Positions 12,491 to 64,000 of a stretch of 64,000 nucleotides of DNA are shown here, piece after piece. The stretch comes from Tubulanus polymorphus (Eukaryota > Animalia > Nemertea). Where the stretch lies: positions 1 to 64,000 of the forward strand of contig NW_027437471.1 in the NCBI RefSeq assembly GCF_964204645.1. The letters run 5' to 3'. The position numbers and the translations under genes were made by a program. Each line of letters starts with the position of its first letter. Within the stretch, counting starts at the first letter, position 1. The notes beneath the pieces are model-generated. The model was given only the letters and a program-made list of their open reading frames with translations. It did not search any database and was not told the DNA's origin.

Positions 12491-12930
<440 letters not shown>

Positions 12931-12954
12931 ATATCACAGACGAATGGAGGCAAG

Positions 12955-29306: not shown

Positions 29307-29437
29307 CGATACGATACGATACGATACGATACGATACGATACGATACGATACGATACGATACGATACGATACGATACGATACGATACGATACGATACGAT
29401 ACGATACGATACGATACGATACGATACGATACGATAC
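29307..29437. repeat. (CGATA)n pentanucleotide microsatellite, ~26 units
   Basis: Pure run. Confidence 0.98.
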
Positions 29438-30012: not shown

Positions 30013-30110
30013 TGTATGGTCTAGTGGTTAGCGTGCTCGGCTGGCATGCCGGAGGTCGCAGGTTCGAGTCCTGCTAGGGTTAGGGTTACGGCCTACCTAA
30101 GGTTAGGGTT
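30013..30110 (+). mobile_element. tRNA-derived head + TTAGGG (copy 4, different flanks)
   Basis: TGGTCTAGTGGTTAGCGTGCTCGGCTGGCATGCCGGAGGTCGCAGGTTCGAGTCCTGCTAGGGTTAGGGTTA. Confidence 0.65.
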
Positions 30111-33624: not shown

Positions 33625-34341
33625 TTTCATACACGTTACGGTCACCTACCACAGCACAAGAGGAATATGGTAATAGCCGGTGGTGTAACTGCGTCTGTTA
33701 TCGTAGCGCCAGTTGTCGCTAGTTTAGCCGTTGGTATCGGTGTACCGATATTATTGGCGTATGTTTATGGCGTGGTACCGATATCGCTGTGTCGCAGCGG
33801 TGGTTGCGGCGTATCGATGACTGACTCCGGGCGGAGTTCGATTTGAGTTCGAAGAGAACGAAGGAAGTGGCCCATCGGGGCCTTATGCCCGTAAGTACTT
33901 AAACCATACTTTTCATATAGTGCAGGGTCCGGAATCGGCTGTTTTTCTAGGATTCATAAGGGATAATTTGATGATGTCATAGGGGGATTAACTGATAAAG
34001 CCACGTTGTCTGGTGTGGCTGCTATATAAATCCCCCTATGACGTCATTTAAGTTAGTTCAGTACTAGTATGAGTGAATGTTTATATTTGTTGTAGCTGAT
34101 TCTCACAGTATAGAAACGACCAGTCACCGGGTAGCGAACCCCAGTATCGGACCTAGTATCGGTGAGATGTCTATGGCTATGACTGGCAGTCTTAGCGCTA
34201 GCGAAGCCACATCTACCGACTCGGGATAATCCGCGATGAGAGCAATCGCTAATCGGCTAGTAACAGAGCGATTGCTGGCTCCAGTTTGAACGGTAGTTTA
34301 TCGGGAAGCGCCGTTGCCGGACCGAGCGGATTCCAAAACAG
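33625..34341 (+). pseudogene. RNF19: RNF19A/B (Dorfin-like RBR E3 ligase) pseudogene fragment, exons 33625-33890 and 34096-34341
   Basis: [54 protein letters not shown] and NPSIG..MTGSLSAS..GSLSGSA match RNF19 as recalled; splice sites intact but frameshifts/stops present and no RING-IBR exons seen. Confidence 0.85.
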
Positions 34342-39585: not shown

Positions 39586-39773
39586 TTACATACACGTTAC
39601 GGTCACCTACCACAGCACAAGAAGAATATGGTAATAGCCGGTGGTGTAACTGCGTCTGTTATCGTAGCGCCAGTTGTCGCTAGTTTAGCCGTTGGTATCG
39701 GTGTACCGATATTATTGGCGTATGTTTACGGCGTGGTACCGATATCGCTGTGTCGCAGCGGTGGTTGCGGCGT
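39586..39773 (+). pseudogene. RNF19: Second RNF19-like exon copy, truncated mid-exon by telomeric repeats
   Basis: Near-identical to 33625-33812, then switches to TTAGGG. Confidence 0.88.
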
Positions 39774-39821
39774 TAGGGTTAGGGGTTAGGGTTAGGGTTA
39801 GGGGTTAGGGTTAGGGTTAGG
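39773..39821 (+). repeat. Telomeric tract: 7 TTAGGG/TTAGGGG units plus TTAGG
   Basis: Read directly. Confidence 0.97.
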
Positions 39822-40399
39822 TTTAGAGATAGAGGTTAGGGGACCAAACCGAAGGTTTGGAGACCCCACTAGTGCACGGGCAGCGGGTTATCCCTGTAAA
39901 AAAGTAGTGAGAGTTAATTGTTGTAGTGAGGCGGTCTACGGGACGTTCATGCCTCGGGGCGTGTTCGTGTCGAGTCGTCGTATCCAGTCTTGTTCGGCTG
40001 CTTCGCGGATCGGTCTCGTGGAGCCTGGTAGGTGTTGGAGACCGTACACCCGAAAGTGTTCGCGGGTGTGGTCGACTTGGTTGAAGTGGTCCGAGACTGG
40101 AGTCGAATTCTTCGTTCTGATGCGTGAGACGTGATGAGTGACGCGTTCTCGTAGAGACATTCCGGTTTGGCCGACGTACAGCATGTTGCACTTGGTGCAT
40201 TCGATGCAGTATACAATTTCACGGGTCGCGCAATTAATTGTGCTGCGGATCGCGTGCATTTTGTTGTGGCTGCGGCAAACGGTTGTTTCTCGGACGAGTG
40301 GACACGTACGACATCTCGGTGTTCTGCATTTCTCGGTGCCTCGACGTCGGGTTGACGGAGTTCTTTGAGTAGACCTGGAAATAGAAGAATTGGAAACAA
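39815..40399 (-). mobile_element. 5'-truncated PLE copy (3' UTR + GIY-YIG coding part only)
   Basis: Same sequence as 40413-40997 (offset 598). Confidence 0.95.
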
Positions 40400-40419
40400 G
40401 GGTTAGGGTTAGGGTTAGG
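40400..40419 (+). repeat. Telomeric tract GGG(TTAGGG)2TTAGG between truncated and full copy
   Basis: Read directly. Confidence 0.95.
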
Positions 40420-40533
40420 TTTAGAGATAGAGGTTAGGGGACCAAACCGAAGGTTTGGAGACCCCACTAGTGCACGGGCAGCGGGTTATCCCTGTAAAAA
40501 AGTAGTGAGAGTTAATTGTTGTAGTGAGGCGGT

Positions 40534-42993
40534 CTACGGGACGTTCATGCCTCGGGGCGTGTTCGTGTCGAGTCGTCGTATCCAGTCTTGTTCGGCTGCT
40601 TCGCGGATCGGTCTCGTGGAGCCTGGTAGGTGTTGGAGACCGTACACCCGAAAGTGTTCGCGGGTGTGGTCGACTTGGTTGAAGTGGTCCGAGACTGGAG
40701 TCGAATTCTTCGTTCTGATGCGTGAGACGTGATGAGTGACGCGTTCTCGTAGAGACATTCCGGTTTGGCCGACGTACAGCATGTTGCACTTGGTGCATTC
40801 GATGCAGTATACAATTTCACGGGTCGCGCAATTAATTGTGCTGCGGATCGCGTGCATTTTGTTGTGGCTGCGGCAAACGGTTGTTTCTCGGACGAGTGGA
40901 CACGTACGACATCTCGGTGTTCTGCATTTCTCGGTGCCTCGACGTCGGGTTGACGGAGTTCTTTGAGTAGACCTGGAAATAGAAGAATTGGAAACAACGG
41001 AAGTATTTCTGTTACGATGCGGTGAAGAGGGGACTCGGGGAGGGGGTGGCTCCGTGGGTTTGAGCTGCGACGAAGTTAGGAGATCTTTGAGACTCTTGTG
41101 CTTGGTGTAGGCGGTGACCGTGGTTACCTCGTCAGACCGGCCGGTGGCCGTAGCCAGTTCCGTAAATCTGGTTCGGATGTTACGGGCTAGGGTTCGGTTG
41201 GCTTCGGAGTGAGGTAAGATAAGCGGTAAACGCTTTTTCGGCGGTTCGTCGGCCCGTTGTTGTTCTCGTAGATCTCGTTCGGCGTGGTGCCGTAGAGCTT
41301 GGCTTTTGATGTGTCGCAGTTCGCGGTCTTTGTAGCCACGACCTCTGAGTACTTTAAGGACGGTTCCGGACGCTGCGTGTAAGTCCGAATCGTTATTGCA
41401 GATGCGCCGGAACCGGAGAATTTGACTTTTAACTATACCGGAAAATGTGTGTTTAGGGTGAAACGAGGATCGATGTAGTAATTGATGCGAATCGGTTGGT
41501 TTGAAGTAGACTTTGGTGTCTACTGTGCCACTTGTCTCGAATCGCGGGCCTTTGAAAGTGGTTACGTCCAGGAAGTTGACGCTGGTGTCGCTGATTTCGA
41601 ACTTGAGTTTGATGGATCGGCTCACTGTTTGTAGGACGTCGATGAATTGCATCAACGTTTCGCGGCCGTGTTCCCAAACTATGTAGATGTCGTCGATGAA
41701 CCGAGCGTATAGCGATGGTTGGAGTTCGCTTCTGGACAGACCTTCTTTTTCCCATTCGGCTACAAAGATATTGGCATAAGAAGGAGCAAAACGCTTACCC
41801 ATTGCGGTACCTTTTACCTGTAAATATGTGTTTTCGTTAAAGTTAAAGTCATTTTTCTTCAGGCTGATTTCGAGTAGTTTCAGTAGCTCGGCATCCGGGC
41901 GTCCCGGGTTCGGGTTATCTCGGAGAGCTTGTCGGATGCTGGCGATACCCTCTTCGTGGGGGATGTTGGTGTAGAGCGAATCGATGTCCATGGTGACGAG
42001 TAACGCATCGGCGCTAAATTGTTTACCGGCCAAAATATCTAGAAAGTGGTTGGTATCTTTGACGTACGACGGGTGACCGCGGGCGATCGGCTGCAAATAG
42101 TAGTCGATCCATTCCGAAATTTCGTAGGTTTCGGAGCCGCAGTCGGAGACGATCGGTCTCCCCGGCGGTACGCGATCGGGTACCGTCCACTTCTCGCGTT
42201 CTTTATGGATTTTGGGAAGCAGATAGAACTGCCTCTGTTTCGGATTATCGGGCGGTAATAGATATTCGGCGGTTTTTAGCGGGATGATTTTTCGTCGAGC
42301 CATATTTTCGATGATTTCGCGAATTTCTTCCCCGGTCTGTTCGAAAATCGGTTGCTGCAGCGGCTGATAATACTCGAGATCGGCTAGTTGGCGCATGGCT
42401 TCGTGGACGTAGTCGTCGCGGTCCATGATAACCGTAGCGGAACCCTTATCGGCGGCTTTGATGACAATATTAGTGTTGTCACGCAGCTGCTGGAGGGCTT
42501 CGCGTTCCTGTTTAGTGAGGTTATCATTTACGCGACGCGTATCCCTGGTTTGTTGAGCCAATTCGTGCGCGTCGTTGCAGAACCCGGCGATTACTGGTTC
42601 TATTTCATCCGGAGCCCAACTGCTGGGCAGACGGAAACGCGGAGCCTCGCGGTCCGGTTTGTCTCGGAAGTGATGGTCGAGTTTCACTAGCCGGTTGAAT
42701 CGGCACACTCCCTTGGTGCGCTCGGTCGCGGCGGCATCAGAACCGATTTTTGGAGTCGGGCAATAAGTGAGGCCCTTTCGGAGTAGCTGATGTTGCGCCG
42801 GACTTAGGCGGAGTGAACGTGTGAGGTTGACCACCGGGCTCCCGAGAGCGGTGACCGGATCGCGTCGCGCTTGGTTTGGTGCCGGTTCTTCGTGTTCGTC
42901 GGACCTGGAAATGGAAGAAATCAGAGAAGCATTGGTTAATTCCGGTTGATTTAACTCACCAATAGTGGACCCGTTGGTCTCACTAATACTTAG
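40534..42993 (-). CDS. PLE reverse transcriptase + GIY-YIG endonuclease (frame open upstream to the ORF1 end; likely expressed by -1 frameshift)
   Basis: ADKGS, FYLLPKIHK, PGRPIVS, MDIDSLYTNIP, GTAMG, RFIDD, FLDV, YFKPT, CRTPRCRTC, IVYCIECTKC..YVGQT..RERVTHH..E..GMN. Confidence 0.96.
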   Translation of the reverse strand, partial: LSISETNGSTIGELNQPELTNASLISSISRSDEHEEPAPNQARRDPVTALGSPVVNLTRSLRLSPAQHQLLRKGLTYCPTPKIGSDAAATERTKGVCRFNRLVKLDHHFRDKPDREAPRFRLPSSWAPDEIEPVIAGFCNDAHELAQQTRDTRRVNDNLTKQEREALQQLRDNTNIVIKAADKGSATVIMDRDDYVHEAMRQLADLEYYQPLQQPIFEQTGEEIREIIENMARRKIIPLKTAEYLLPPDNPKQRQFYLLPKIHKEREKWTVPDRVPPGRPIVSDCGSETYEISEWIDYYLQPIARGHPSYVKDTNHFLDILAGKQFSADALLVTMDIDSLYTNIPHEEGIASIRQALRDNPNPGRPDAELLKLLEISLKKNDFNFNENTYLQVKGTAMGKRFAPSYANIFVAEWEKEGLSRSELQPSLYARFIDDIYIVWEHGRETLMQFIDVLQTVSRSIKLKFEISDTSVNFLDVTTFKGPRFETSGTVDTKVYFKPTDSHQLLHRSSFHPKHTFSGIVKSQILRFRRICNNDSDLHAASGTVLKVLRGRGYKDRELRHIKSQALRHHAERDLREQQRADEPPKKRLPLILPHSEANRTLARNIRTRFTELATATGRSDEVTTVTAYTKHKSLKDLLTSSQLKPTEPPPPRVPSSPHRNRNTSVVSNSSISRSTQRTPSTRRRGTEKCRTPRCRTCPLVRETTVCRSHNKMHAIRSTINCATREIVYCIECTKCNMLYVGQTGMSLRERVTHHVSRIRTKNSTPVSDHFNQVDHTREHFRVYGLQHLPGSTRPIREAAEQDWIRRLDTNTPRGMNVP

Positions 42994-42999
42994 TTTAAA
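42963..42999 (-). promoter_or_regulatory. Predicted -1 ribosomal frameshift signal: U_UUA_AAC, 7-nt spacer, hairpin (heptamers also at 49332-49338, 55686-55692, 62040-62046)
   Basis: Heptamer in the correct phase immediately before the ORF1 UAA; -1 frame open into RT; stem TAGTG-A-GACC-AACG-GGTC-CACTA. Confidence 0.85.
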
Positions 43000-44546
43000 C
43001 CACTGAGCCAGTGGTCCAGCAGGGTGTTAGCTGTACCACGGTTCCAGTGGATCCCGTCTCCAACAACTCTGAAGCGTCGATCATCGATGGGTGGTATCGC
43101 GGTGACGTCGTCGTTATTCTCGAGGAATTCGTTGAACTTCCGGGCGAACTGCTGGTGTTCGCGGGTCGTGTTGAGTTGAACGAAGTGGACGAACGAGTGC
43201 TGATACTTCTTGACTGCGGCGTTGATCAGGCGCTGTGTGGTCTTCTTGGCGGTCGCTTCGAAGTTGTTGTCGCGGTTGTTGATTCCGACGCTGATGATCA
43301 CCGTATCCGGGCGATCTCGGCGCTCCGGTACAGCATCGATCAGGTCGGCGAGATGAGCTATCTTGCAGCCGGGGAAGCTCTCGATCTGGACGTCATCCGG
43401 ACGGCGGCTTGATGTGATGTTACTCAGATTTGAGTCACCAATCACCAGAATGGGTCGCCGGGTTGGTGGCAGACTCCAATCCTGTTTCTTCCGACCCGTT
43501 TTCGGATGACGGCGAACTTCCTGGGGCGCCATCGGTCTCGGTGTTGGCGTCGGACTTCGCGCTGGCAGTAGGCGCCCTGGTGACCTGTAATGAGACGGAG
43601 AGCTGGAAAGAGAAGAAGAGAGAGACGGCGTCGGACTGCTGGTTGGTGCGGTCGGCGTTCTCTGCGGCGGCGGCGTCGGGTTTCGAGGCGGCGGCGTCGG
43701 ACTTCTCGGTGGTGTCGGACTTCTTGGTGGCGGCGGCGGCGTCGGCATCGGACTTCTCGGTGGTGGCGCCATTCTGGTTGGTGGCGTCCTGGTGACATCC
43801 GCGTAGCTTCTCGGTGACCTGGAATCAGAAAAAGAAGGAGACGCTGTGGGCGCGGCGGGCGCGGCTGCGGTTGGTGCAGGCGTCCTCGGCGTCGCGGGCT
43901 TTCGAATCTTCCGGCTCGGTCTCGGCGGCGGACGAATCTTCGGCTCCGTGGGTGCCTCCTGGTGGTGTGACCTGAAATGAGAAGGGGAAGAAGGTGGGTT
44001 AGATAGGACATTTCTGAGTTTGTCAGACAGAGCCTGACCGCGGAATTTCGACCGCAAATCCAGCGCGATGTTGAAAAGCCGGATCGTTCCGGGGCTCAGA
44101 CGGGAGCCGAAATTCCTCCGGGCCCATGTCAGGGCGACATCCTGTGCTGATAGACAGTCCGGCAGAGGATCACCCATTAGCTCAACAAATGTGGCAGCAT
44201 AATGGATGGTCAGCTCTTTCGAAACTGTCTCCATCCAGACGTCCGCGGCAGCGTGCAGCTGCACCGTTACTGCTTCGGTGCAAGCCGCCGGCCGCAGGAA
44301 CATCTTCAGATGGTCCTTCTTCCTCCGAATCGCTTTCGGACCAGAGCTCAACTGGGCAAGGTGGTGCGCCACTTGAAGAGCTCTATAATACGTTTTCGGC
44401 GACATCCCGGGTTGCTGGTGTCGCTCAGGGCGTCCTCCGCCCTTGCTGGTCTTCTCAGCTGGTGGTCGTTTCTTCTTTCGAGTAGATCGCTCCATTGACA
44501 GATATTTCGGCGAGGTTGCCTTCGTCAGTGTCAGTGCAGGAATCAT
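42990..44546 (-). CDS. PLE ORF1: basic/helical N-terminus, Pro/Ser/Thr-rich linker, C-terminal SGNH/GDSL esterase (likely true start Met18 at 44495)
   Basis: SGNH blocks ILVIGDSNL, SFPG, ISVGINN, DGIH. Confidence 0.9.
   Translation of the reverse strand: MIPALTLTKATSPKYLSMERSTRKKKRPPAEKTSKGGGRPERHQQPGMSPKTYYRALQVAHHLAQLSSGPKAIRRKKDHLKMFLRPAACTEAVTVQLHAAADVWMETVSKELTIHYAATFVELMGDPLPDCLSAQDVALTWARRNFGSRLSPGTIRLFNIALDLRSKFRGQALSDKLRNVLSNPPSSPSHFRSHHQEAPTEPKIRPPPRPSRKIRKPATPRTPAPTAAAPAAPTASPSFSDSRSPRSYADVTRTPPTRMAPPPRSPMPTPPPPPRSPTPPRSPTPPPRNPTPPPQRTPTAPTSSPTPSLSSSLSSSPSHYRSPGRLLPARSPTPTPRPMAPQEVRRHPKTGRKKQDWSLPPTRRPILVIGDSNLSNITSSRRPDDVQIESFPGCKIAHLADLIDAVPERRDRPDTVIISVGINNRDNNFEATAKKTTQRLINAAVKKYQHSFVHFVQLNTTREHQQFARKFNEFLENNDDVTAIPPIDDRRFRVVGDGIHWNRGTANTLLDHWLSGLN
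44496..44533 (-). ncRNA. Type I minimal hammerhead ribozyme, unit 1
   Basis: UGACA-CUGACGA-A-GGC-AACCUC-GCC-GAAA-UA-UC/UGUCA: complete core, stems I and II, minimal palindromic stem III. Confidence 0.85.
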
Positions 44547-44569
44547 GCTGAACTAGGATTAGACACGGG

Positions 44570-44577
44570 TTTTTATA
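44570..44577 (-). promoter_or_regulatory. Candidate TATA box (TATAAAAA) upstream of the hammerhead/ORF1
   Basis: Motif and position only; present in all units. Confidence 0.4.
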
Positions 44578-46872
44578 CACGCAGCGCGCAACAAGTGAAC
44601 AGTATTTGAGTTAGAAGTTAAGTGACCATATGAGACCTTGTGATCTAGACTAATTGTACTTCTGTGATCAAGCTAATAGACAAACTAGGGGTCTGACTAA
44701 TTATGCCTTTGATCCAGAGTGACTAGAAAACAGCACTAATTATGGCCCTTGATCTAGCTGTTGAATAGTTTGCTTTGATGTATAGTTCTAAAGATCTAAA
44801 GAACGGCGTGTCTAATATAGAATTGAAAAGTTTATTTCGATATAACCTAATAAATACTCAAAGTGTTTTCTATAAAGAGAAATCTAGAATATGTATTATT
44901 AATATACGTGAACCGGAATGTTCGAAATATGTCCGAGTTCAGTTTCAAAATTGCTTAATTCCTAATTAGTTTAGACGCGTTAATTAGCGGTGCGCGGCCG
45001 AGGCGTATTCCGATATACGCGTGTTTACTAAATAGTCGTAAATGGTGAAATCCGGCTCTTAGTTAATCAAGTTTTCTCCGTATTCTAAAGCTTTAAAGAG
45101 CGGATTTTGAAATATCTACGCGGTATTCTACCGAAAATTGGATGAATTAGACAGCGCGGCGTCGGCGATTTAGTAGGAAGTTATAACCCGTAAGATCTAA
45201 ATTACTGAGTGAGCGCGGGTGGTTAATTAGCCCTAATTATGGGTGACGAGTTTTGATAAAAATGTCTTACTGATACGTCTGTTTTAATTCTAAGTTCTTA
45301 AATATAATTCTATTAGATAAACTACGCTTATTTAGAGTTATTAGGATCGAGTAAAGCTATGTGAACTTGAATATGTGACAAATATATTCAGACCGGAGCG
45401 CGGGTATTCAGTAAATCGGTTTAAGCTTGCGTAGTTTGAGTGGTTCAAAAACACTATGATCTCTTCTTTAATCCGAAGGTTGAAATATATACGTGATATA
45501 AAACTCTTTTTGAATCGGGAATATTGGGCTGTGTTCTTTGAAAAAAAACTGATGAGTTTGAAGGCGTCATAACTGCGATTTTGTATAGAATTGAGTCGGA
45601 TAATTAGTCAAGAGGCGCGGGTGGCCGATCGGTCACTAATTATGAGTGACTTGTAAACAGTGATTGATGTCCGTGGACTATTATTTATCCTATAAACTTC
45701 TTATACTTCTACAACCTATAGTGCGGTTTTTGAATATAGCTACTAATACTTTTGAGCGATCTCATTAGAATTGTTATCCGAAATAAACTGTCTGTTTTAG
45801 AGAAATTTGAAACTTGACACCCGGATCTATATAGAGTATGTTCCAAGAGTTGGCGCGTAGATACGATAATAGTTAATTAGGACGTAGCGGGTTAGGTCCC
45901 CGACCGAACGTTATAGATTAAACGGAGGTTAATTAGGGTGCCGCGGGTTCGAGTCCCGACCAGGCGCCGTTTAGTAATTGAATAGTTCTATTCTAAATGT
46001 TTTTTACCTATTCTGGATTCCTTTTAATTCTGAATCTTTGACGGATACAATAGTACTTTTCAGATGTTTCTACGATATAATCTTAGTGCCGACGCATATT
46101 TTCAAAATAAATAAGAGCGGTGGACTGGTTACCGGTATCTAACGCGGGGCACCGGCAACCCGTCAGTACTAGCGGTTAATTTCGGAGCGGCGGGTACGGT
46201 TCCCGAGTATTCTCCGGAGCTTAATTCGGGTGCCGCGGGTTCGAGTCCCGATCAGGCGCGCCGTTTTAGTAATTGAGTATATTCTTACCTATTCTAGATT
46301 CCCTTTCTTTCTAAATTTATAATAGATTAATTAATACTTTTCGGGTGTTTTTATGATATAATCTCAGTGCTGACGCATATTTTCGAAATAGATAATAGCG
46401 GTGGACTGGTTACCGGTTTCTATCGTCCCGGGACAGGCAACCAGTCTGTACTAGCGGTTAGGGTTCGGTTCCCGATATCGCGCTTTTGTTTATTTTTCTA
46501 ACTGTTTCTGATATTTGGTCTGTCTTCTTACTTACTGAATTTCGATTGAGTTTTCAAAGTAAAGCAGAGAGAACTAATTAAAAGATAAAAGGTTGATGAT
46601 TCCTGTGGAGCTTGTGATCTTGGAGTTTGTTTTGTACTCTGTCTCTGAGCGGGTTTCTGCTTCAGGCGACGGAGGATGATTCTGCAAATAGATTGATGAT
46701 TAATAATTAATCAGTTAAGATAATTTACGAGGGAAACCTGGCACGGGCTAAGGTTAGGTTTAGAGATAGAGGTTAGGGGACCAAACCGAAGGTTTGGAGA
46801 CCCCACTAGTGCACGGGCAGCGGGTTATCCCTGTAAAAAAGTAGTGAGAGTTAATTGTTGTAGTGAGGCGGT

Positions 46873-55686: not shown

Positions 55687-57254
55687 TTTAAACCACTGAG
55701 CCAGTGGTCCAGCAGGGTGTTAGCTGTACCACGGTTCCAGTGGATCCCGTCTCCAACAACTCTGAAGCGTCGATCATCGATGGGTGGTATCGCGGTGACG
55801 TCGTCGTGAATCTCGAGGAATTCGTTGAACTTCCGGGCGAACTGCTGGTGTTCGCGGGTCGTGTTGAGTTGAACGAAGTGGACGAACGAGTGCTGATACT
55901 TCTTGACTGCGGCGTTGATCAGGCGCTGTGTGGTCTTCTTGGCGGTCGCTTCGAAGTTGTTGTCGCGGTTGTTGATTCCGACGCTGATGATCACCGTATC
56001 CGGGCGATCTCGGCGCTCCGGTACAGCATCGATCAGGTCGGCGAGATGAGCTATCTTGCAGCCGGGGAAGCTCTCGATCTGGACGTCATCCGGACGGCGG
56101 CTTGATGTGATGTTACTCAGATTTGAGTCACCAATCACCAGAATGGGTCGCCGGGTTGGTGGCAGACTCCAATCCTGTTTCTTCCGACCCGTATTCGGAT
56201 GACGGCGAACTTCCTGGGGCGCCATCGGTCTCGGTGTAGGCGTCGGACTTCGCGCTGGCAGTAGGCGCCCTGGTGACCTGTAATGAGACGGAGAGCTGGA
56301 AAGAGAAGAAGAGAGAGACGGCGTCGGACTGCTGGTTGGTGCGGTCGGCGTTCTCTGCGGCGGCGGCGGCGGCGGCGGCGTCGGGTTTCGAGGCGGCGGC
56401 GTCGGACTTCTCGGTGGCGTCGGACTTCTTGGTGGCGGCGGCGGCGGCGTCGGCATCGGACTTCTCGGTGGTGGCGCCATTCTGGTTGGTGGCGTCCTGG
56501 TGACATCCGCGTAGCTTCTCGGTGACCTGGAATCAGAAAAAGAAGGAGGCGCTGTGGGCGCGGCGGGCGCGACTGCGGTTGGTGCAGGCGTCCTCGGCGT
56601 CGCGGGCTTTCGAATCTTCCGGCTCGGTCTCGGCGGCGGACGAATCTTCGGCTCCGTGGGTGCCTCCTGGTGGTGTGACCTGAAATGAGAAGGGGAAGAA
56701 GGTGGGTTAGATAGGACATTTCTGAGTTTGTCAGACAGAGCCTGACCGCGGAATTTCGACCGCAAATCCAGCGCGATGTTGAAAAGCCGGATCGTTCCGG
56801 GGCTCAGACGGGAGCCGAAATTCCTCCGGGCCCATGTCAGGGCGACATCCTGTGCTGATAGACAGTCCGGCAGAGGATCACCCATTAGCTCAACAAATGT
56901 GGCAGCGTAATGGATGGTCAGCTCTTTCGAAACTGTCTCCATCCAGACGTCCGCGGCAGCGTGCAGCTGCACCGTTACTGCTTCGGTGCAAGCCGCCGGC
57001 CGCAGGAACATCTTCAGATGGTCCTTCTTCCTCCGAATCGCTTTCGGACCAGAGCTCAACTGGGCAAGGTGGTGCGCCACTTGAAGAGCTCTATAATAGG
57101 TTTTCGGCGACATCCCGGGTTGCTGGTGTCGCTCAGGGCGTCCTCCGCCCTTGCTGGTCTTCTCAGCTGGTGGTCGTTTCTTCTTTCGAGTAGATCGCTC
57201 CATTGACAGATATTTCGGCGAGGTTGCCTTCGTCAGTGTCAGTGCAGGAATCAT
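55683..57254 (-). CDS. PLE ORF1 SGNH esterase, unit 3
   Basis: Same motifs. Confidence 0.9.
   Translation of the reverse strand: MIPALTLTKATSPKYLSMERSTRKKKRPPAEKTSKGGGRPERHQQPGMSPKTYYRALQVAHHLAQLSSGPKAIRRKKDHLKMFLRPAACTEAVTVQLHAAADVWMETVSKELTIHYAATFVELMGDPLPDCLSAQDVALTWARRNFGSRLSPGTIRLFNIALDLRSKFRGQALSDKLRNVLSNPPSSPSHFRSHHQEAPTEPKIRPPPRPSRKIRKPATPRTPAPTAVAPAAPTAPPSFSDSRSPRSYADVTRTPPTRMAPPPRSPMPTPPPPPPRSPTPPRSPTPPPRNPTPPPPPPPQRTPTAPTSSPTPSLSSSLSSSPSHYRSPGRLLPARSPTPTPRPMAPQEVRRHPNTGRKKQDWSLPPTRRPILVIGDSNLSNITSSRRPDDVQIESFPGCKIAHLADLIDAVPERRDRPDTVIISVGINNRDNNFEATAKKTTQRLINAAVKKYQHSFVHFVQLNTTREHQQFARKFNEFLEIHDDVTAIPPIDDRRFRVVGDGIHWNRGTANTLLDHWLSGLN
57204..57241 (-). ncRNA. Hammerhead ribozyme, unit 3
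   Basis: Identical motif. Confidence 0.85.
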
Positions 57255-59580
57255 GCTGAACTAGGATTAGACACGGGTTTTTATACACGCAGCGCGCAAC
57301 AAGTGAACAGTATTCGAGTTAGAAGTTAAGTGACCATATGAGACCTTGTGATCTAGACTAATTGTACTTCTGTGATCAAGCTAATAGACAAACTAGGGGT
57401 CTGACTAATTATGCCTTTGATCCAGAGTGACTAGAAAACAGCACTAATTATGGCCCTTGATCTAGCTGTTGAATAGTTTGCTTTGATGTATAGTTCTAAA
57501 GATCTAAAGAACGGCGTGTCTAATATAGAATTGAAAAGTTTATTTCGATATAACCTAATAAATACTCAAAGTGTTTTCTATAAAGAGAAATCTAGAATAT
57601 GTATTATTAATATACGTGAACCGGAATGTTCGAAATATGTCCGAGTTCAGTTTCAAAATTGCTTAATTCCTAATTAGTTTAGACGCGTTAATTAGCGGTG
57701 CGCGGCCGAGGCGTATTCCGATATACGCGTGTTTACTAAATAGTCGTAAATGGTGAAATCCGGTTCTTAGTTAATCAAGTTTTCTCCGTATTCTAAAGCT
57801 TTTAAGAGCGGATTTTGAAATATCTACGCGGTATTCTACCGAAAATTGGATGAATTAGACAGCGCGGCGTCGGCGATTTAGTAGGAAGTTATAACCCGTA
57901 AGATCTAAATTACTGAGTGAGCGCGGGTGGTTAATTAGCCCTAATTATGGGTGACGAGTTTTGATAGAAATGTCTTACTAATACGTCTGTTTTAATTCTA
58001 AGTTCTTAAATATAATTCTATTAGATAAACTACGCTTATTTAGAGTTATTAGGATCGAGTAAAGCTATGTGAACTTGAACATGTGACAAATATATTCAGA
58101 CCGGAGCGCGGGTATTCAGTAAATCGGTTTAAGCTTGCGTAGTTTGAGTGGTTCAAAAACACTATGATCTCTTCTTTAATCCGAAGGTTGAAATATATAC
58201 GGGATATAAAACTCTTTTTGAATCGGGAATATTGGGCTGTGTTCTTTGAGAAAAACCGATGAGTTTGAAGGCGTCGTAACTGCGATTTTGTATAGAATTG
58301 AGTCGGATAATTAGTCAAGAGGCGCAGGTGGCCGATCGGTCACTAATTATGAGTGACTTGTAAACAGTGATTGATGTCCGTGGACTATTATTTATCCTAT
58401 AAACTTCTTATACTTCTACAACCTATAGTGCGGTTTTTGAATATAGCTATTAATACTTTTGAGCGATCTCATTAGAATTGTTATCCGAAAATAAACTGTC
58501 TGTTTTAGAGAAATTTGAAACTTGACACCCGGATCTATATAGAGTATGTTCCAAGAGTTGGCGCGTAGATACGATAATAGTTAATTAGGACGTAGCGGGT
58601 TAGGTCCCCGACCGAACGTTATAGATTAAACGGAGGTTAATTAGGGTGCCGCGGGTTCGAGTCCCGACCAGGCGCCGTTTAGTAATTGAATAGTTCTATT
58701 CTAAATGTTTTTTACCTATTCTGGATTCCTTTTAATTCTGAATCTTTGACGGATACAATAGTACTTTTCAGATGTTTCTACGATATAATCTTAGTGCCGA
58801 CGCATATTTTCAAAATAAATAAGAGCGGTGGACTGGTTACCGGTATCTAACGCGGGGCACCGGCAACCCGTCAGTACTAGCGGTTAATTTCGGAGCGGCG
58901 GGTACGGTTCCCGAGTATTCTCCGGAGCTTAATTCGGGTGCCGCGGGTTCGAGTCCCGATCAGGCGCGCCGTTTTAGTAATTGAGTATATTCTTACCTAT
59001 TCTAGATTCCCTTTCTTTCTAAATTTATAATAGATTAATTAATACTTTTCGGGTGTTTCTATGATATAATCTCAGTGCTGACGCATATTTTCGAAATAGA
59101 TAATAGCGGTGGACTGGTTACCGGTTTCTATCGTCCTGGGACAGGCAACCAGTCTGTACTAGCGGTTAGGGTTCGGTTCCCGATATCGCGCTTTTGTTTA
59201 TTTTTCTAACTGTTTCTGATATTTGGTCTGTCTTCTTACTTACTGAATTTCGATTGAGTTTTCAAAGTAAAGCAGAGAGAACTAATTAAAAGATAAAAGG
59301 TTGATGATTCCTGTGGAGCTTGTGATCTTGGAGTTTGTTTTGTACTCTGTCTCTGAGCGGGTTTCTGCTTCAGGCGACGGAGGATGATTCTGCAAATAGA
59401 TTGATGATTAATAATTAATCAGTTAAGATAATTTACGAGGGAAACCTGGCACGGGCTAAGGTTAGGTTTAGAGATAGAGGTTAGGGGACCAAACCGAAGG
59501 TTTGGAGACCCCACTAGTGCACGGGCAGCGGGTTATCCCTGTAAAAAAGTAGTGAGAGTTAATTGTTGTAGTGAGGCGGT

Positions 59581-62040
59581 CTACGGGACGTTCATGCCTC
59601 GGGGCGTGTTCGTGTCGAGTCGTCGTATCCAGTCTTGTTCGGCTGCTTCGCGGATCGGTCTCGTGGAGCCTGGTAGGTGTTGGAGACCGTACACCCGAAA
59701 GTGTTCGCGGGTGTGGTCGACTTGGTTGAAGTGGTCCGAGACTGGAGTCGAATTCTTCGTTCTGATGCGTGAGACGTGATGAGTGACGCGTTCTCGTAGA
59801 GACATTCCGGTTTGGCCGACGTACAGCATGTTGCACTTGGTGCATTCGATGCAGTATACAATTTCACGGGTCGCGCAATTAATTGTGCTGCGGATCGCGT
59901 GCATTTTGTTGTGGCTGCGGCAAACGGTTGTTTCTCGGACGAGTGGACACGTACGACATCTCGGTGTTCTGCATTTCTCGGTGCCTCGACGTCGGGTTGA
60001 CGGAGTTCTTTGAGTAGACCTGGAAATAGAAGAATTGGAAACAACGGAAGTATTTCTGTTACGATGCGGTGAAGAGGGGACTCGGGGAGGGGGTGGCTCC
60101 GTGGGTTTGAGCTGCGACGAAGTTAGGAGATCTTTGAGACTCTTGTGCTTGGTGTAGGCGGTGACCGTGGTTACCTCGTCAGACCGGCCGGTGGCCGTAG
60201 CCAGTTCCGTAAATCTGGTTCGGATGTTACGGGCTAGGGTTCGGTTGGCTTCGGAGTGAGGTAAGATAAGCGGTAAACGCTTTTTCGGCGGTTCGTCGGC
60301 CCGTTGTTGTTCTCGTAGATCTCGTTCGGCGTGGTGCCGTAGAGCTTGGCTTTTGATGTGTCGCAGTTCGCGGTCTTTGTAGCCACGACCTCTGAGTACT
60401 TTAAGGACGGTTCCGGACGCTGCGTGTAAGTCCGAATCGTTATTGCAGATGCGCCGGAACCGGAGAATTTGACTTTTAACTATACCGGAAAATGTGTGTT
60501 TAGGGTGAAACGAGGATCGATGTAGTAATTGATGCGAATCGGTTGGTTTGAAGTAGACTTTGGTGTCTACTGTGCCACTTGTCTCGAATCGCGGGCCTTT
60601 GAAAGTGGTTACGTCCAGGAAGTTGACGCTGGTGTCGCTGATTTCGAACTTGAGTTTGATGGATCGGCTCACTGTTTGTAGGACGTCGATGAATTGCATC
60701 AACGTTTCGCGGCCGTGTTCCCAAACTATGTAGATGTCGTCGATGAACCGAGCGTATAGCGATGGTTGGAGTTCGCTTCTGGACAGACCTTCTTTTTCCC
60801 ATTCGGCTACAAAGATATTGGCATAAGAAGGAGCAAAACGCTTACCCATTGCGGTACCTTTTACCTGTAAATATGTGTTTTCGTTAAAGTTAAAGTCATT
60901 TTTCTTCAGGCTGATTTCGAGTAGTTTCAGCAGCTCGGCATCCGGGCGTCCCGGGTTCGGGTTATCTCGGAGAGCTTGTCGGATGCTGGCGATACCCTCT
61001 TCGTGGGGGATGTTGGTGTAGAGCGAATCGATGTCCATGGTGACGAGTAACGCATCGGCGCTAAATTGTTTACCGGCCAAAATATCTAGAAAGTGGTTGG
61101 TATCTTTGACGTACGACGGGTGACCGCGGGCGATCGGCTGCAAATAGTAGTCGATCCATTCCGAAATTTCGTAGGTTTCGGAGCCGCAGTCGGAGACGAT
61201 CGGTCTCCCCGGCGGTACGCGATCGGGTATCGTCCACTTCTCGCGTTCTTTATGGATTTTGGGAAGCAGATAGAACTGCCTCTGTTTCGGATTATCGGGC
61301 GGTAATAGATATTCGGCGGTTTTTAGCGGGATGATTTTTCGTCGAGCCATATTTTCGATGATTTCGCGAATTTCTTCCCCGGTCTGTTCGAAGATCGGTT
61401 GCTGCAGCGGCTGATAATACTCGAGATCGGCTAGTTGGCGCATGGCTTCGTGGACGTAGTCGTCGCGGTCCATGATAACCGTAGCGGAACCCTTATCGGC
61501 GGCTTTGATGACAATATTAGTGTTGTCACGCAGCTGCTGGAGGGCTTCGCGTTCCTGTTTAGTGAGGTTATCATTTACGCGACGCGTATCCCTGGTTTGT
61601 TGAGCCAATTCGTGCGCGTCGTTGCAGAACCCGGCGATTACTGGTTCTATTTCATCCGGAGCCCAACTGCTGGGCAGACGGAAACGCGGAGCCTCGCGGT
61701 CCGGTTTGTCTCGGAAGTGATGGTCGAGTTTCACTAGCCGGTTGAATCGGCACACTCCCTTGGTGCGCTCGGTCGCGGCGGCATCAGAACCGATTTTTGG
61801 AGTCGGGCAATAAGTGAGGCCCTTTCGGAGTAGCTGATGTTGCGCCGGACTTAGGCGGAGTGAACGTGTGAGGTTGACCACCGGGCTCCCGAGAGCGGTG
61901 ACCGGATCGCGTCGCGCTTGGTTTGGTGCCGGTTCTTCGTGTTCGTCGGACCTGGAAATGGAAGAAATCAGAGAAGCATTGGTTAATTCCGGTTGATTTA
62001 ACTCACCAATAGTGGACCCGTTGGTCTCACTAATACTTAG
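59581..62040 (-). CDS. PLE RT + GIY-YIG, unit 4
   Basis: Same motifs; intact. Confidence 0.96.
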   Translation of the reverse strand, partial: LSISETNGSTIGELNQPELTNASLISSISRSDEHEEPAPNQARRDPVTALGSPVVNLTRSLRLSPAQHQLLRKGLTYCPTPKIGSDAAATERTKGVCRFNRLVKLDHHFRDKPDREAPRFRLPSSWAPDEIEPVIAGFCNDAHELAQQTRDTRRVNDNLTKQEREALQQLRDNTNIVIKAADKGSATVIMDRDDYVHEAMRQLADLEYYQPLQQPIFEQTGEEIREIIENMARRKIIPLKTAEYLLPPDNPKQRQFYLLPKIHKEREKWTIPDRVPPGRPIVSDCGSETYEISEWIDYYLQPIARGHPSYVKDTNHFLDILAGKQFSADALLVTMDIDSLYTNIPHEEGIASIRQALRDNPNPGRPDAELLKLLEISLKKNDFNFNENTYLQVKGTAMGKRFAPSYANIFVAEWEKEGLSRSELQPSLYARFIDDIYIVWEHGRETLMQFIDVLQTVSRSIKLKFEISDTSVNFLDVTTFKGPRFETSGTVDTKVYFKPTDSHQLLHRSSFHPKHTFSGIVKSQILRFRRICNNDSDLHAASGTVLKVLRGRGYKDRELRHIKSQALRHHAERDLREQQRADEPPKKRLPLILPHSEANRTLARNIRTRFTELATATGRSDEVTTVTAYTKHKSLKDLLTSSQLKPTEPPPPRVPSSPHRNRNTSVVSNSSISRSTQRTPSTRRRGTEKCRTPRCRTCPLVRETTVCRSHNKMHAIRSTINCATREIVYCIECTKCNMLYVGQTGMSLRERVTHHVSRIRTKNSTPVSDHFNQVDHTREHFRVYGLQHLPGSTRPIREAAEQDWIRRLDTNTPRGMNVP

Positions 62041-63608
62041 TTTAAACCACTGAGCCAGTGGTCCAGCAGGGTGTTAGCTGTACCACGGTTCCAGTGGATC
62101 CCGTCTCCAACAACTCTGAAGCGTCGATCATCGATGGGTGGTATCGCGGTGACGTCGTCGTGAATCTCGAGGAATTCGTTGAACTTCCGGGCGAACTGCT
62201 GGTGTTCGCGGGTCGTGTTGAGTTGAACGAAGTGGACGAACGAGTGCTGATACTTCTTGACTGCGGCGTTGATCAGGCGCTGTGTGGTCTTCTTGGCGGT
62301 CGCTTCGAAGTTGTTGTCGCGGTTGTTGATTCCGACGCTGATGATCACCGTATCCGGGCGATCTCGGCGCTCCGGTACAGCATCGATCAGGTCGGCGAGA
62401 TGAGCTATCTTGCAGCCGGGGAAGCTCTCGATCTGGACGTCATCCGGACGGCGGCTTGATGTGATGTTACTCAGATTTGAGTCACCAATCACCAGAATGG
62501 GTCGCCGGGTTGGTGGCAGACTCCAATCCTGTTTCTTCCGACCCGTATTCGGATGACGGCGAACTTCCTGGGGCGCCATCGGTCTCGGTGTAGGCGTCGG
62601 ACTTCGCGCTGGCAGTAGGCGCCCTGGTGACCTGTAATGAGACGGAGAGCTGGAAAGAGAAGAAGAGAGAGACGGCGTCGGACTGCTGGTTGGTGCGGTC
62701 GGCGTTCTCTGCGGCGGCGGCGGCGGCGGCGGCGTCGGGTTTCGAGGCGGCGGCGTCGGACTTCTCGGTGGCGTCGGACTTCTTGGTGGCGGCGGCGGCG
62801 GCGTCGGCATCGGACTTCTCGGTGGTGGCGCCATTCTGGTTGGTGGCGTCCTGGTGACATCCGCGTAGCTTCTCGGTGACCTGGAATCAGAAAAAGAAGG
62901 AGGCGCTGTGGGCGCGGCGGGCGCGACTGCGGTTGGTGCAGGCGTCCTCGGCGTCGCGGGCTTTCGAATCTTCCGGCTCGGTCTCGGCGGCGGACGAATC
63001 TTCGGCTCCGTGGGTGCCTCCTGGTGGTGTGACCTGAAATGAGAAGGGGAAGAAGGTGGGTTAGATAGGACATTTCTGAGTTTGTCAGACAGAGCCTGAC
63101 CGCGGAATTTCGACCGCAAATCCAGCGCGATGTTGAAAAGCCGGATCGTTCCGGGGCTCAGACGGGAGCCGAAATTCCTCCGGGCCCATGTCAGGGCGAC
63201 ATCCTGTGCTGATAGACAGTCCGGCAGAGGATCACCCATTAGCTCAACAAATGTGGCAGCGTAATGGATGGTCAGCTCTTTCGAAACTGTCTCCATCCAG
63301 ACGTCCGCGGCAGCGTGCAGCTGCACCGTTACTGCTTCGGTGCAAGCCGCCGGCCGCAGGAACATCTTCAGATGGTCCTTCTTCCTCCGAATCGCTTTCG
63401 GACCAGAGCTCAACTGGGCAAGGTGGTGCGCCACTTGAAGAGCTCTATAATAGGTTTTCGGCGACATCCCGGGTTGCTGGTGTCGCTCAGGGCGTCCTCC
63501 GCCCTTGCTGGTCTTCTCAGCTGGTGGTCGTTTCTTCTTTCGAGTAGATCGCTCCATTGACAGATATTTCGGCGAGGTTGCCTTCGTCAGTGTCAGTGCA
63601 GGAATCAT
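62037..63608 (-). CDS. PLE ORF1 SGNH esterase, unit 4
   Basis: Same motifs. Confidence 0.9.
   Translation of the reverse strand: MIPALTLTKATSPKYLSMERSTRKKKRPPAEKTSKGGGRPERHQQPGMSPKTYYRALQVAHHLAQLSSGPKAIRRKKDHLKMFLRPAACTEAVTVQLHAAADVWMETVSKELTIHYAATFVELMGDPLPDCLSAQDVALTWARRNFGSRLSPGTIRLFNIALDLRSKFRGQALSDKLRNVLSNPPSSPSHFRSHHQEAPTEPKIRPPPRPSRKIRKPATPRTPAPTAVAPAAPTAPPSFSDSRSPRSYADVTRTPPTRMAPPPRSPMPTPPPPPPRSPTPPRSPTPPPRNPTPPPPPPPQRTPTAPTSSPTPSLSSSLSSSPSHYRSPGRLLPARSPTPTPRPMAPQEVRRHPNTGRKKQDWSLPPTRRPILVIGDSNLSNITSSRRPDDVQIESFPGCKIAHLADLIDAVPERRDRPDTVIISVGINNRDNNFEATAKKTTQRLINAAVKKYQHSFVHFVQLNTTREHQQFARKFNEFLEIHDDVTAIPPIDDRRFRVVGDGIHWNRGTANTLLDHWLSGLN
63558..63595 (-). ncRNA. Hammerhead ribozyme, unit 4
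   Basis: Identical motif. Confidence 0.85.
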
Positions 63609-64000
63609 GCTGAACTAGGATTAGACACGGGTTTTTATACACGCAGCGCGCAACAAGTGAACAGTATTCGAGTTAGAAGTTAAGTGACCATATGAGACCT
63701 TGTGATCTAGACTAATTGTACTTCTGTGATCAAGCTAATAGACAAACTAGGGGTCTGACTAATTATGCCTTTGATCCAGAGTGACTAGAAAACAGCACTA
63801 ATTATGGCCCTTGATCTAGCTGTTGAATAGTTTGCTTTGATGTATAGTTCTAAAGATCTAAAGAACGGCGTGTCTAATATAGAATTGAAAAGTTTATTTC
63901 GATATAACCTAATAAATACTCAAAGTGTTTTCTATAAAGAGAAATCTAGAATATGTATTATTAATATACGTGAACCGGAATGTTCGAAATATGTCCGAGT

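Follow-up and report, generated by a model that had tools for sequence, protein, structure and literature searches.

The array at the right of the window (the whole 64,000-nt stretch of Tubulanus polymorphus DNA that was analysed) of this nemertean is made of a Neptune-like, two-ORF, endonuclease-bearing (EN+) Penelope-like element (PLE), whose telomere-like tail is joined to TTAGGG tracts. As far as the junctions can be read from sequence, attachment to telomere repeats is not limited to endonuclease-less PLEs, because many EN+ relatives show the same join. Our best reading, to which we give about an even chance, is a two-route parasite: its reverse transcriptase (RT) would be primed from the 3' end of a TTAGGG strand, and its endonuclease would drive internal insertion. 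The coordinates of the features are given in Table 1.

Table 1. Features of the PLE array and its proximal flank; element anatomy refers to copy 2.
Feature	Position	Strand	Description
Proximal flank	39405..39772	+	low-copy duplicated sequence, abrupt stop at ...GGTTGCGGCGT
Telomere-type tract 1	39773..39814	+	TTAGGG/TTAGGGG, 6 full units + TTAG (about seven units, 42 nt)
Copy 0	39815..40399	-	3'-terminal 585 nt (ORF2 end, 3' UTR, tail), 5'-truncated at ...GGAAACAA
Telomere-type tract 2	40400..40412	+	GGGTTAGGGTTAG, 13 nt, on truncated 5' end of copy 0
Copy 1	40413..46751	-	full-length unit; ORF2 40534..42834, ORF1 42990..44546
Copy 2	46752..53105	-	full-length 6354-nt unit; reference for anatomy
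3' tail	46752..46779	-	sense CCCCTAACCTCTATCTCTAAACCTAACC; degenerate C-strand telomere-like (CCCTAA-like) units
3' UTR	46776..46819	-	conserved motif TGCCCGTGC (46819..46811); hairpin GGGGTCTCCAAACC-TTCG-GTTTGGTCCCC
ORF2	46873..49173	-	RT, CX4CxxC linker, GIY-YIG endonuclease
ORF1	49329..50900	-	conserved N-terminal domain, proline-rich linker, C-terminal SGNH/GDSL esterase (GDS, G, GINN, DGIH)
Slippery heptamer U_UUA_AAC	49332..49338	-	directly ahead of ORF1 stop codon; candidate -1 ribosomal frameshift site
Minimal PLE-type hammerhead ribozyme	50850..50887	-	overlaps first ORF1 codons; predicted cut after C 50855
5' region	50901..53105	-	2.2 kb, AT-rich, without long ORF; begins with TTAGCCCGTGCC, conserved 5' junction motif
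TATAAAA	50925..50931	-	about 25 nt upstream of ORF1 ATG
Copy 3	53106..59459	-	full-length; one substitution relative to copy 2
Copy 4	59460..64000	-	4548 nt identical to copy 2; cut by window end

From the flank outwards, the array is composed of tract 1, a 585-bp 3' fragment (copy 0), 13 nt of TTAGGG sequence, three complete 6.35-kb units, and a fourth unit that is cut by the window end. The repeat units begin in register at 39808, 40406, 46745, 53099, and 59453, and share 98–100% identity. Their period is exactly 6354 nt, and 6339 for the first. Every 3' end faces the flank because the sense strand of the element is the minus strand. The preliminary description had counted at least five PLE copies with the 3' end proximal. 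The polarity was confirmed, but only three copies are complete within the window; the other two are the 585-nt fragment and the window-cut unit. Since the fifth copy is cut there, the distal end of the array lies outside the view.

TTAGGG tracts were found at only two places in the window, 39773–39814 and 40400–40412, where the expectation from shuffled sequence is 0. Tract 1 is in register with the PLE tail and carries an extra G in two of its units. TTAGGG-like matches at 14606, 15571, 28104, and 30074 were rejected as telomeric tracts; they are parts of a tRNA-derived SINE-like repeat. The flank had been taken for unique DNA ending in TTAGGG. The repeats do start at 39773, but the flank is duplicated: 39405–39773 is 94% identical to a paralogue at 33432–33812, which runs on beyond the breakpoint with ATCGATGACTG. 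Relative to this paralogue, the flank is cut off at a GC-rich site, ...GCGGCGT, and not at the AT-rich ATT type of site that PLE endonucleases cut in vitro (PMC11167929). The left 39 kb of the window is a mosaic of segmental duplications and satellites, in which a search for coding ORFs and genes gave repeats only and none that was convincing. By its composition, therefore, this gene-poor left flank appears subtelomere-like.

The junctions between copies are of two kinds. Copy 0 is followed directly by GGGTTAGGGTTAG and then by the 3' tail of copy 1. A second TTAGGG tract between copies thus exists as first described, although it holds only about two repeats. At the three junctions between full units, no telomerase-type tract was seen, and the degenerate tail of one unit meets the 5' end of the next. 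This is the ordinary PLE head-to-tail junction, common to 10 relatives including a killifish (Fundulus) Neptune copy, and the resulting tandem (pseudo-LTR) organisation, here with a period of 6354, is canonical for EN+ PLEs. The same array could be explained by DNA-level amplification of one PLE dimer through unequal crossing-over or break-induced replication, or by an assembly artefact, and it would then be uninformative on transposition. The exact period, the single site in 6354 at which copies 2–4 differ, and the duplication-prone neighbourhood point in this direction. Nevertheless, we consider this explanation improbable. Tandems with the same junction occur in many independent relatives and are a known PLE property (PMC11167929, PMC3846280). 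Copy 1, an older variant with about 28 substitutions and 3 indels against copies 2–4, differs from them at about 30 sites and yet shares the junction. Nor would amplification or an artefact account for the telomere repeats beside copies 0 and 1.

Both ORFs are uninterrupted in each of the four units in which they occur (518/523 aa for ORF1 and 766 aa for ORF2), in agreement with the first account of intact ORFs. ORF2 matched the RVT_1 (E = 1.1e-7) and GIY-YIG (E = 3.3e-4) profiles, and most of its 3326 homologues carry RVT_1, GIY-YIG, and HTH_animal domains. The closest named proteins are from teleosts, molluscs, an echinoderm, and a hemichordate. The RT common to PLEs is present with its catalytic DD conserved. 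The Neptune-type Cys linker and the intact GIY-YIG reported earlier were both borne out. The linker reads CRTPRCRTC (CX4CxxC, residues 637–645), as is typical of the Neptune clade, and 64 of 81 aligned relatives have all three of its cysteines. The C-terminal endonuclease reads IVY-C-IE-CTKC-NML-YVG, and all of the GIY, CxxC, YVG, H, E, and N residues are there. It thus has the cysteines between GIY and YIG and the catalytic H, E, and N of canonical EN+ PLEs. Across the 81 aligned relatives, Y, Y, G, and H are invariant, and E and N are found in 79. Upstream, the ORF2 frame stays open as far as about 49368, overlapping the ORF1 end in the -1 frame. Of 57 related loci, 39 have TTTAAAC at the place equivalent to the slippery heptamer. 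When the region around the frameshift was folded, its energy did not stand out from that of shuffled sequence, and no pseudoknot is therefore claimed.

An upstream, frameshift-separated ORF1 is a feature of the Neptune-clade PLEs of fish, molluscs, and other aquatic animals, some members of which have an esterase in it; both are seen here. An esterase ORF1 has been noted for Neptune-like PLEs of fish and molluscs (PMC5408684). The C-terminal domain of ORF1 matched the solved ZfL2-1 esterase 4c1b (profile E = 7.5e-10), and in relatives the esterase is combined with NADAR or AlkB domains. An exact-protein look-up of ORF1 matched no record. The ORF1 of ZfL2-1 is a homologous SGNH esterase, but ZfL2-1 is a CR1/L2-type LINE and thus a different retroelement class, and the T. 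polymorphus esterase sits behind a PLE-specific N-terminal domain. The hammerhead, which was detected by a core-motif search and comparison with relatives, has TGACA/TGTCA as stem I and CUGACGA...GAAA as the core. It is conserved in 30 relatives, where stem II covaries (91.8% paired, 0/500 shuffles) and stem I pairs too; an Rfam scan of the units for hammerhead and other families gave no match. A hammerhead is expected of canonical EN+ PLEs, and the Neptune clade shares both this ribozyme and the tandem organisation with the T. polymorphus element.

At 2.2 kb, the 5' region is unusual for its length (that of relatives measures about 0.45 kb), and it holds an internal 250-nt direct repeat. A low-stringency BLAST of this region against the flank and all loci revealed nothing beyond that repeat. 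At the place equivalent to TATAAAA, the relative L039 has TATATAA. Folding of the 3' end gave no energy signal above shuffles. The tail itself is conserved in sequence: its last 16 nt (ATCTCTAAACCTAACC) are identical in a distant relative (L031) with an ORF2 only about 36% identical, and the last 14 nt are shared by L034 and L037.

Telomere-like repeats beside the tail were then counted in relatives, as at least two telomere-like units within 300 nt after ORF2, at 67 distinct related EN+ loci. C-strand repeats lie just 3' of ORF2 at 25 of the 67 and the G-strand form at 1, whereas a control window inside ORF2 gave 2 and 0, respectively; metagenome loci are included in the survey. Perfect (CCCTAA)3-19 follows the tail at L023, L032, L039, L042, L044, L054, L059, L065, L067, L073, and L079. 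Beyond the tract, five of these loci (L032, L039, L042, L065, and L079) carry a 5'-truncated PLE that points the same way as the first, and at L039 the two PLEs come from different families and form a stack around 19 perfect repeats. Within a single family, copies that are nearly identical differ in tract length, with 3 repeats in L045 and 7–9 in L067 and L044. At least five loci (L023, L045, L054, L059, and L067) have unrelated, non-telomeric sequence after the tract. Every lineage with tract joins keeps the catalytic residues of both the endonuclease and the RT.

These loci bear on an explanation that does without host telomerase, namely that the TTAGGG repeats are made by the element's own RT, which would copy CCUAAC, the last six bases of the tail, again and again. 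An ordinary endonuclease nick at an internal site would be followed by repeat copying, element copying, and template jumps; a jump from truncated cDNA to a new tail would give tract 2, and jumps from 5' ends to tails would give the tandem junctions. The whole array would thus be a single internal insertion. Repeated copying of CCUAAC yields exactly (TTAGGG)n, and the short tracts invariably adjoin the tail in phase with it. The variation of tract length within a family, the unrelated sequence after the tract, and the conservation of the endonuclease in all lineages speak for it as well. Moreover, no RTs are closer to telomerase RT than those of PLEs (PMC8557442), and PLE loci form as tandems, the RT starting internally at an AC-rich site (PMC11167929). 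We regard this explanation as unlikely on balance, because the flank looks subtelomeric and ends at a GC-rich and not an AT-rich ATT site, and the one clearly internal copy (L001, described below) has no tract. The two-family stack of L039 would in addition require either a heterologous template jump or a nested insertion of great precision.

The preliminary description had favoured an end-maintenance system, in which an element specialised for chromosome ends works with telomerase and its terminal additions alternate with telomerase repeats. The constant polarity of the copies agrees with such a system, as do the telomere repeats where the array meets the flank and on the truncated 5' end of one copy. 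So does the same stacked architecture in relatives, and the intact ORFs and near-identical distal copies suggest recent activity. We nevertheless find this system hard to credit. Three of the four inter-copy junctions are without telomerase repeats and have the standard PLE tandem junction, which relatives show in non-telomeric settings, so that the proposed alternation comes down to the 13 nt between copies 0 and 1. Specialisation for ends is not supported in view of L001, a second T. polymorphus copy at 12.15 Mb on OZ123226.1 (a 32-Mb chromosome). It is 97.9% identical and 5'-truncated, sits between ordinary genes, and adjoins an AT-rich ...TATATT site with a short tail only and without a tract. 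An RT-core search for shorter annotated T. polymorphus fragments gave none, its matches being only from fish, mollusc, and other hosts at ~50% identity. Furthermore, terminal addition does not need the conserved endonuclease, the host clearly has telomerase-type repeats, and nothing observed points to host dependence or host benefit.

In the two-route reading, the RNA tail would anneal to a TTAGGG-strand 3' end, which would then prime reverse transcription. This end might lie at a break healed by telomerase, at the terminus of a chromosome, or at a nick within telomeric repeats. The multi-unit tandem would arise as in other PLEs, by multi-copy transcripts, template jumps, or later unequal exchange, and the GIY-YIG endonuclease would serve ordinary internal insertion, such as that of the copy at 12 Mb. 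The 3' join to G-strand repeats has the polarity expected for G-strand 3'-end priming. The terminal-priming pattern first described, with its polarity and TTAGGG at the 3' junctions, is seen at copy 0, between copies 0 and 1, and in relatives; the full-unit junctions lack tracts. Telomere repeats on truncated 5' ends have been described as the mark that terminal transposition of PLEs leaves (PMC3846280), and tandem PLE loci as giving multi-copy transcripts on which the RT initiates internally (PMC11167929). Several points weigh against the two-route reading. The tracts are short, 42 and 13 nt; each of the five or more loci with a tract and then unrelated sequence needs a healed break or an interstitial telomeric tract; and the comparison within T. 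polymorphus covers two loci of the array family, one of them internal.

EN+ PLEs are described in the literature surveyed as intrachromosomal and as preferring (TA)n or other microsatellites, whereas here a telomere-like C-strand tail is joined to TTAGGG tracts. In the Fundulus Neptune copy, the junction of tail and 5' motif is the same as in T. polymorphus. The endonuclease-deficient, telomere-attached Athena/Coprina PLEs of rotifers, fungi, and protists have 3' reverse-complement telomere repeats, and so do the T. polymorphus tail (CCCCTAACCTCTATCTCTAAACCTAACC) and the relatives with their strand bias of 25 to 1. They also have the 3' end proximal, telomere repeats on 5'-truncated copies, and head-to-tail stacking at healed ends; the copies are likewise stacked here, with such repeats between copies 0 and 1 and at the five relatives in which a truncated PLE follows the tract. 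In contrast, Athena/Coprina lack the endonuclease and belong to other RT clades, whereas GIY-YIG is intact in every T. polymorphus unit. Their hammerhead motif adjoins telomeric repeats and that of the T. polymorphus element lies at the ORF1 start; unlike them, this element also has an internal copy. SART1 and TRAS1 of Bombyx mori are endonuclease-bearing elements that lie in fixed orientation within telomeric repeats, and their host keeps telomerase-type repeats. The orientation is constant here too. Tail and tract are in register, but L001 lies outside repeats, and the repeat-like nature of the tail masks any cut position of the endonuclease in the tract. SART1/TRAS1 are R1-clade LINEs with an AP-type endonuclease and poly(A) tails that insert at a fixed nucleotide of TTAGG, and not PLEs with GIY-YIG and a telomere-like tail. 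At the chromosome ends of Drosophila, HeT-A/TART/TAHRE lie head to tail in one polarity, truncated at the 5' end to varying extents, and replace telomerase altogether, whereas TTAGGG tracts stand at junctions here.

PLEs are currently split into EN+ elements that insert inside chromosomes and endonuclease-less Athena/Coprina that attach to telomeres via C-strand tails. The T. polymorphus array is an EN+ Neptune-like element with both a telomere tail and a telomere junction, as are about a third of the 67 related loci. These 25 of 67 telomere-tailed EN+ loci may be a new comparative result, and an earlier description is possible. For genome annotation, the finding is a caution that TTAGGG beside a PLE need not mark a chromosome end. 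At sturgeon herpesvirus integration sites, GIY-YIG PLEs border telomere-like repeats (PMC12031113), and these sites may be an example. If confirmed, telomere attachment would be a property of the RNA tail and the RT and not a consequence of endonuclease loss. It is conceivable, though less likely than not, that a widespread lineage of EN+ Neptune-like PLEs with a template-like CCUAAC tail can extend G-strand ends, by priming from terminal TTAGGG 3' ends or by telomerase-like repeat synthesis of its own. PLE RTs are the sister group of telomerase RT, and therefore an active element with a CCUAAC tail would make it possible to ask directly, by biochemistry, whether telomere repeats can be extended or synthesised by the RT of a retrotransposon. 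If such a lineage exists, telomere attachment preceded endonuclease loss or was independent of it, and the lineage would be a living intermediate between retrotransposon and telomerase.

All long ORFs of the array lie on the minus strand without exception. Therefore, the 3′ end of the element points towards the flank and its 5′ end towards the window end. A direct repeat starting at 39808 recurs in register at 40406, 46745, 53099 and 59453 (spacings of 598, 6339, 6354 and 6354), with 98–100% identity between copies. Copies 1, 2 and 3 are complete units, and copy 4 exceeds the window end. Every unit has both ORFs open, ORF2 with 766 aa and ORF1 with 518 aa (copy 1) or 523 aa (the other copies). 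TTAGGG-type repeats were found on the plus strand at only two sites within the 25-kb region, and dinucleotide shuffles of the window gave zero such tracts. Copy 0, the fragment next to the flank, stops at ...GGAAACAA where the full copies go on with CGGAAGTATT, and its truncated end is directly abutted by GGGTTAGGGTTAG and then the 3′ tail of copy 1. The preliminary description of at least five copies with the 3′ end proximal, intact ORFs and a second TTAGGG tract between copies (here 0 and 1) is thus borne out. Copy 0 is 100% identical to copy 1 along its length. About 28 substitutions and 3 indels separate copy 1 from copies 2–4, which differ among themselves at one site. At least two source variants fed the array. 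Its distal units are very young, or else they have been homogenised. DNA-level amplification or an assembly error may contribute to the unit number; as the explanation of the array it is improbable and leaves the junctions unexplained.

The telomerase-type tract is absent from all three full-unit junctions, where ...CTCTATCTCTAAACCTAACC meets TTAGCCCGTGCCAGG... in sense orientation. The unit junction is common to the window and ten relatives including a Fundulus heteroclitus locus, and consists of TGCC-N-GTGC, a variable hairpin, a CCCTAA-like tail and AGCC(C/A)GTGCC (alignment A8). PLE loci are known to be tandem, with transcripts that span several copies and on which the RT initiates internally (PMC11167929). 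Therefore, the 6354-bp periodicity is ordinary PLE structure and no evidence for the alternation with telomerase proposed earlier. The final 16 nt of the tail are the same in the window and the related locus L031 despite an ORF2 identity of only ~36%, and two further loci (L034, L037) share the final 14 nt. Since tail end and junction are kept among distant relatives, the tail is a functional RNA component that has been conserved. The tail is bracketed in every unit and in relatives by the near-identical motifs TGCC-N-GTGC (3′ UTR, 46811-46819) and GCC-N-GTGCC (5′ end of the next unit, 46740-46748). In the anole element, the optional PLE 'tail' is defined by two RT initiation sites lying side by side, and the motifs may correspond to these.

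Features of the array, of the reference unit (copy 2, sense strand minus) and of the left 39 kb
Feature	Position	Strand	Details
Tract 1	39773-39814	+	TTAGGG, TTAGGGG, TTAGGG, TTAGGG, TTAGGGG, TTAGGG, TTAG
Tract 2	40400-40412	+	GGGTTAGGGTTAG
Copy 0	39815-40399	-	terminal 585 nt of element
5′ region	from 53105, 2.2 kb	-	opens with TTAGCCCGTGCC; AT-rich; no long ORF
TATAAAA	50931..50925	-	
Hammerhead ribozyme	50887..50850	-	stem I TGACA/TGTCA; core CUGACGA; stem II GGC/GCC; GAAA-UAUC; predicted cut after C 50855
ORF1	50900..49329	-	N-terminal domain kept in relatives; proline-rich linker; C-terminal SGNH esterase
Candidate frameshift heptamer U_UUA_AAC	49338..49332	-	immediately 5′ of ORF1 stop
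3′ UTR		-	TGCCCGTGC, hairpin, tail CCCCTAACCTCTATCTCTAAACCTAACC
25-bp G-rich repeat, 17 copies	1006-1426		long pure or near-pure array
(ATC)146	12492-12930		long pure or near-pure array
33-bp satellite, 27 copies	27089-27994		long pure or near-pure array
(ACGAT)26	29306-29437		long pure or near-pure array

The hammerhead was not reported by an Rfam scan; its motif also occurs in relatives, on the sense strand only. In a 31-sequence alignment, 91.8% of stem II cells are paired with 47 double changes; 0 of 500 shuffles equalled this pairing, and slid controls reached 23–43%. Stem I extends to 5 bp or longer in 55% of sequences versus 6% after shuffling. The hammerhead likewise overlaps the ORF start in an anole PLE (PMC11167929). 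Single-sequence domain scores of ORF1 are marginal. A ten-homologue profile matched the solved esterase of zebrafish ZfL2-1 ORF1 (E = 7.5e-10), and Lipase_GDSL_2 was matched by 10/10 homologues with invariant S, G, N and H. Esterase ORFs are mentioned for Neptune-like PLEs of fish and molluscs (PMC5408684). In metagenome scaffolds, ORF1-type proteins lie directly 5′ of RT-GIY-YIG ORFs. Some relatives' ORF1 proteins (P0121-P0129; loci L002, L003, L004) carry, besides the C-terminal esterase, a NADAR (PF08719) or AlkB-type dioxygenase (PF13532) domain at the N terminus; neither is in the window ORF1, and no description of these accessory domains for PLEs was found in the accessible literature.

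ORF2 is in the -1 frame relative to ORF1, open from about 49368. TTTAAAC occupies the same position in L003 and L004, and in 39 of the 57 related loci that have an ORF upstream. The candidate heptamer is consistent with the frameshift drawn for PLE ORF1 (PMC8557442); a stimulatory structure was looked for at this site and was unsupported. Past the ORF1 stop, and before the conserved portion of ORF2 begins, a stretch of ~55 nt (49243-49298, minus strand; GTGAGT...polypyrimidine...CAG) looks like a small intron candidate. Introns are known to be retained by PLEs. The RVT_1 and GIY-YIG matches of ORF2 and its linker CRTPRCRTC agree with the RT, Neptune-type Cys linker and C-terminal endonuclease described previously, and the GIY-YIG residues are kept across 81 aligned relatives. 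The nearest named proteins are from teleosts, molluscs, sea urchin, tick and hemichordate. Judged by motifs and host range rather than by a tree with named references, the element probably belongs with the Neptune-type canonical PLEs, because it combines a C-terminal endonuclease with a CX2-5CxxC linker, a frameshifted esterase ORF1, a hammerhead and tandem organisation (PMC8557442, PMC5408684).

The flank had been taken for unique DNA. It is not, since 39405-39773 matches 33432-33812 at 94% identity, and this paralogue continues with ATCGATGACTG... at the point where the flank changes to TAGGGTTAGGGG. The sequence that the telomere tract truncates contains a candidate exon, an ORF with a transmembrane-like segment (39577-39789), which is intact in the paralogue (33616-33846). 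The left 39 kb is a mosaic, with smaller blocks in two or three copies, some between 31.4 and 39.8 kb, and a convincing gene was nowhere found in it. One block of ~10-13 kb occurs twice (about 4030-14500 and 16350-27200; 85-98% identity) and holds 40-bp, 64-bp and C-rich 24-28-bp satellite arrays. At four places (28040-28125, 14540-14625, 15520-15590, 30020-30095), CTAGGGTTAGGGTTA is preceded by a tRNA-derived SINE-like head (GGTCTAGTGGTTAGCG...GGTTCGAGTCC), for which ARAGORN gave zero tRNA calls. The SINE-like copies explain every TTAGGG-like match outside the array. By its composition, the left 39 kb looks like subtelomeric or other duplication-prone DNA, a resemblance that does not prove position.

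LOC141902624 of Tubulanus polymorphus (GCA_964204645.2) is the closest ORF2 relative, at 96% identity, which marks the window as nemertean rather than human. The gene maps to 12.15 Mb of OZ123226.1 (32.06 Mb), flanked by a sugar-transporter gene and NDUFV3, and represents a copy of the element (unit positions 3569-6345, 97.9% identity) with a 5′ truncation inside ORF1. Therefore, ORF1 is part of the retrotransposed unit, and the element also inserts within chromosomes. The copy ends ...CTCTATCTCTAAACCTAAACCC, followed by AATATAATG, without a tract, and its flank on the priming strand finishes ...TATATT. This matches the AT-rich ATT-type site cut in vitro by purified PLE protein (PMC11167929). 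Both this internal copy and the three tract-less junctions speak against the end-maintenance system of the preliminary description, which presumes a hypothetical host benefit and is very unlikely.

A profile scan collected 80 related loci. CCCTAA versus TTAGGG counts 3′ of ORF2 were strongly one-sided. Of the 67 distinct loci whose sequence extends 150 nt or more past the stop codon, 25 carry at least two C-strand telomere-like units within 300 nt and 1 carries the G-strand form; a control window within ORF2 gave 2 and 0, respectively. Perfect runs of 3-19 CCCTAA units follow the tail in L023, L032, L039, L042, L044, L054, L059, L065, L067, L073 and L079. After the tract, a PLE in the same orientation begins at ORF2 residue 222 (L042), 1 (L079) or 105 (L065), as a short 3′ fragment of another PLE (L032), or 3 nt 5′ of the hammerhead core (L039, where the 19 repeats are preceded by a PLE from another family). 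This is the layout of window copies 0 and 1. In L039, the 19 perfect units span 1579-1692 and the 5′ end of the second copy lies ~30 nt 3′ of TATATAA; that end may be where the transcript truly starts and not a random truncation. L044 and L073 terminate within the tract, and unrelated sequence follows it in L023, L054, L059, L067 and L045. Near-identical families include tract-bearing and tract-less copies. Both main branches of the ORF2 tree contain tract-bearing copies; the window itself sits on a long, weakly placed branch. The tract-PLE pattern is real and recurrent across hosts. The main rival explanation, in which iterative copying of CCUAAC by the RT generates the repeats and the array is one internal insertion with template jumps, would account for short tracts of variable length and for tracts followed by unrelated DNA; we consider it rather unlikely.

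At the proximal junction, the element tail is in register with the G-strand repeats, and polarity is constant across the array copies. Both the RT and the endonuclease are conserved. The best reading, to which we give about an even chance, is that the tail primes on a TTAGGG-strand 3′ end and that the endonuclease serves an internal route. The RNA tail would pair with this 3′ end, from which reverse transcription would be primed; the end could be a telomerase-healed break, a terminus or a nick inside a telomeric tract. The endonuclease would supply internal insertion as a second route. Annealing-primed insertion is favoured because the flank breaks at GC-rich ...GCGGCGT and not at an ATT site, because long perfect tracts are flanked by stacked elements of different families, and because the flank appears subtelomeric.

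In published accounts, endonuclease-bearing (EN+) PLEs are intrachromosomal and prefer (TA)n or other microsatellites as targets, and it is the EN- PLEs that are restricted to termini, with reverse-complement telomeric repeats (PMC8557442, PMC3846280). Sturgeon GIY-YIG PLEs bounded by telomere-like repeats have been noted, uninterpreted (PMC12031113). A description of telomere-tailed EN+ Neptune-like elements was not found in the accessible literature, which does not cover all relevant work. The pattern of telomere-tailed EN+ PLEs bears on the origin of telomerase.
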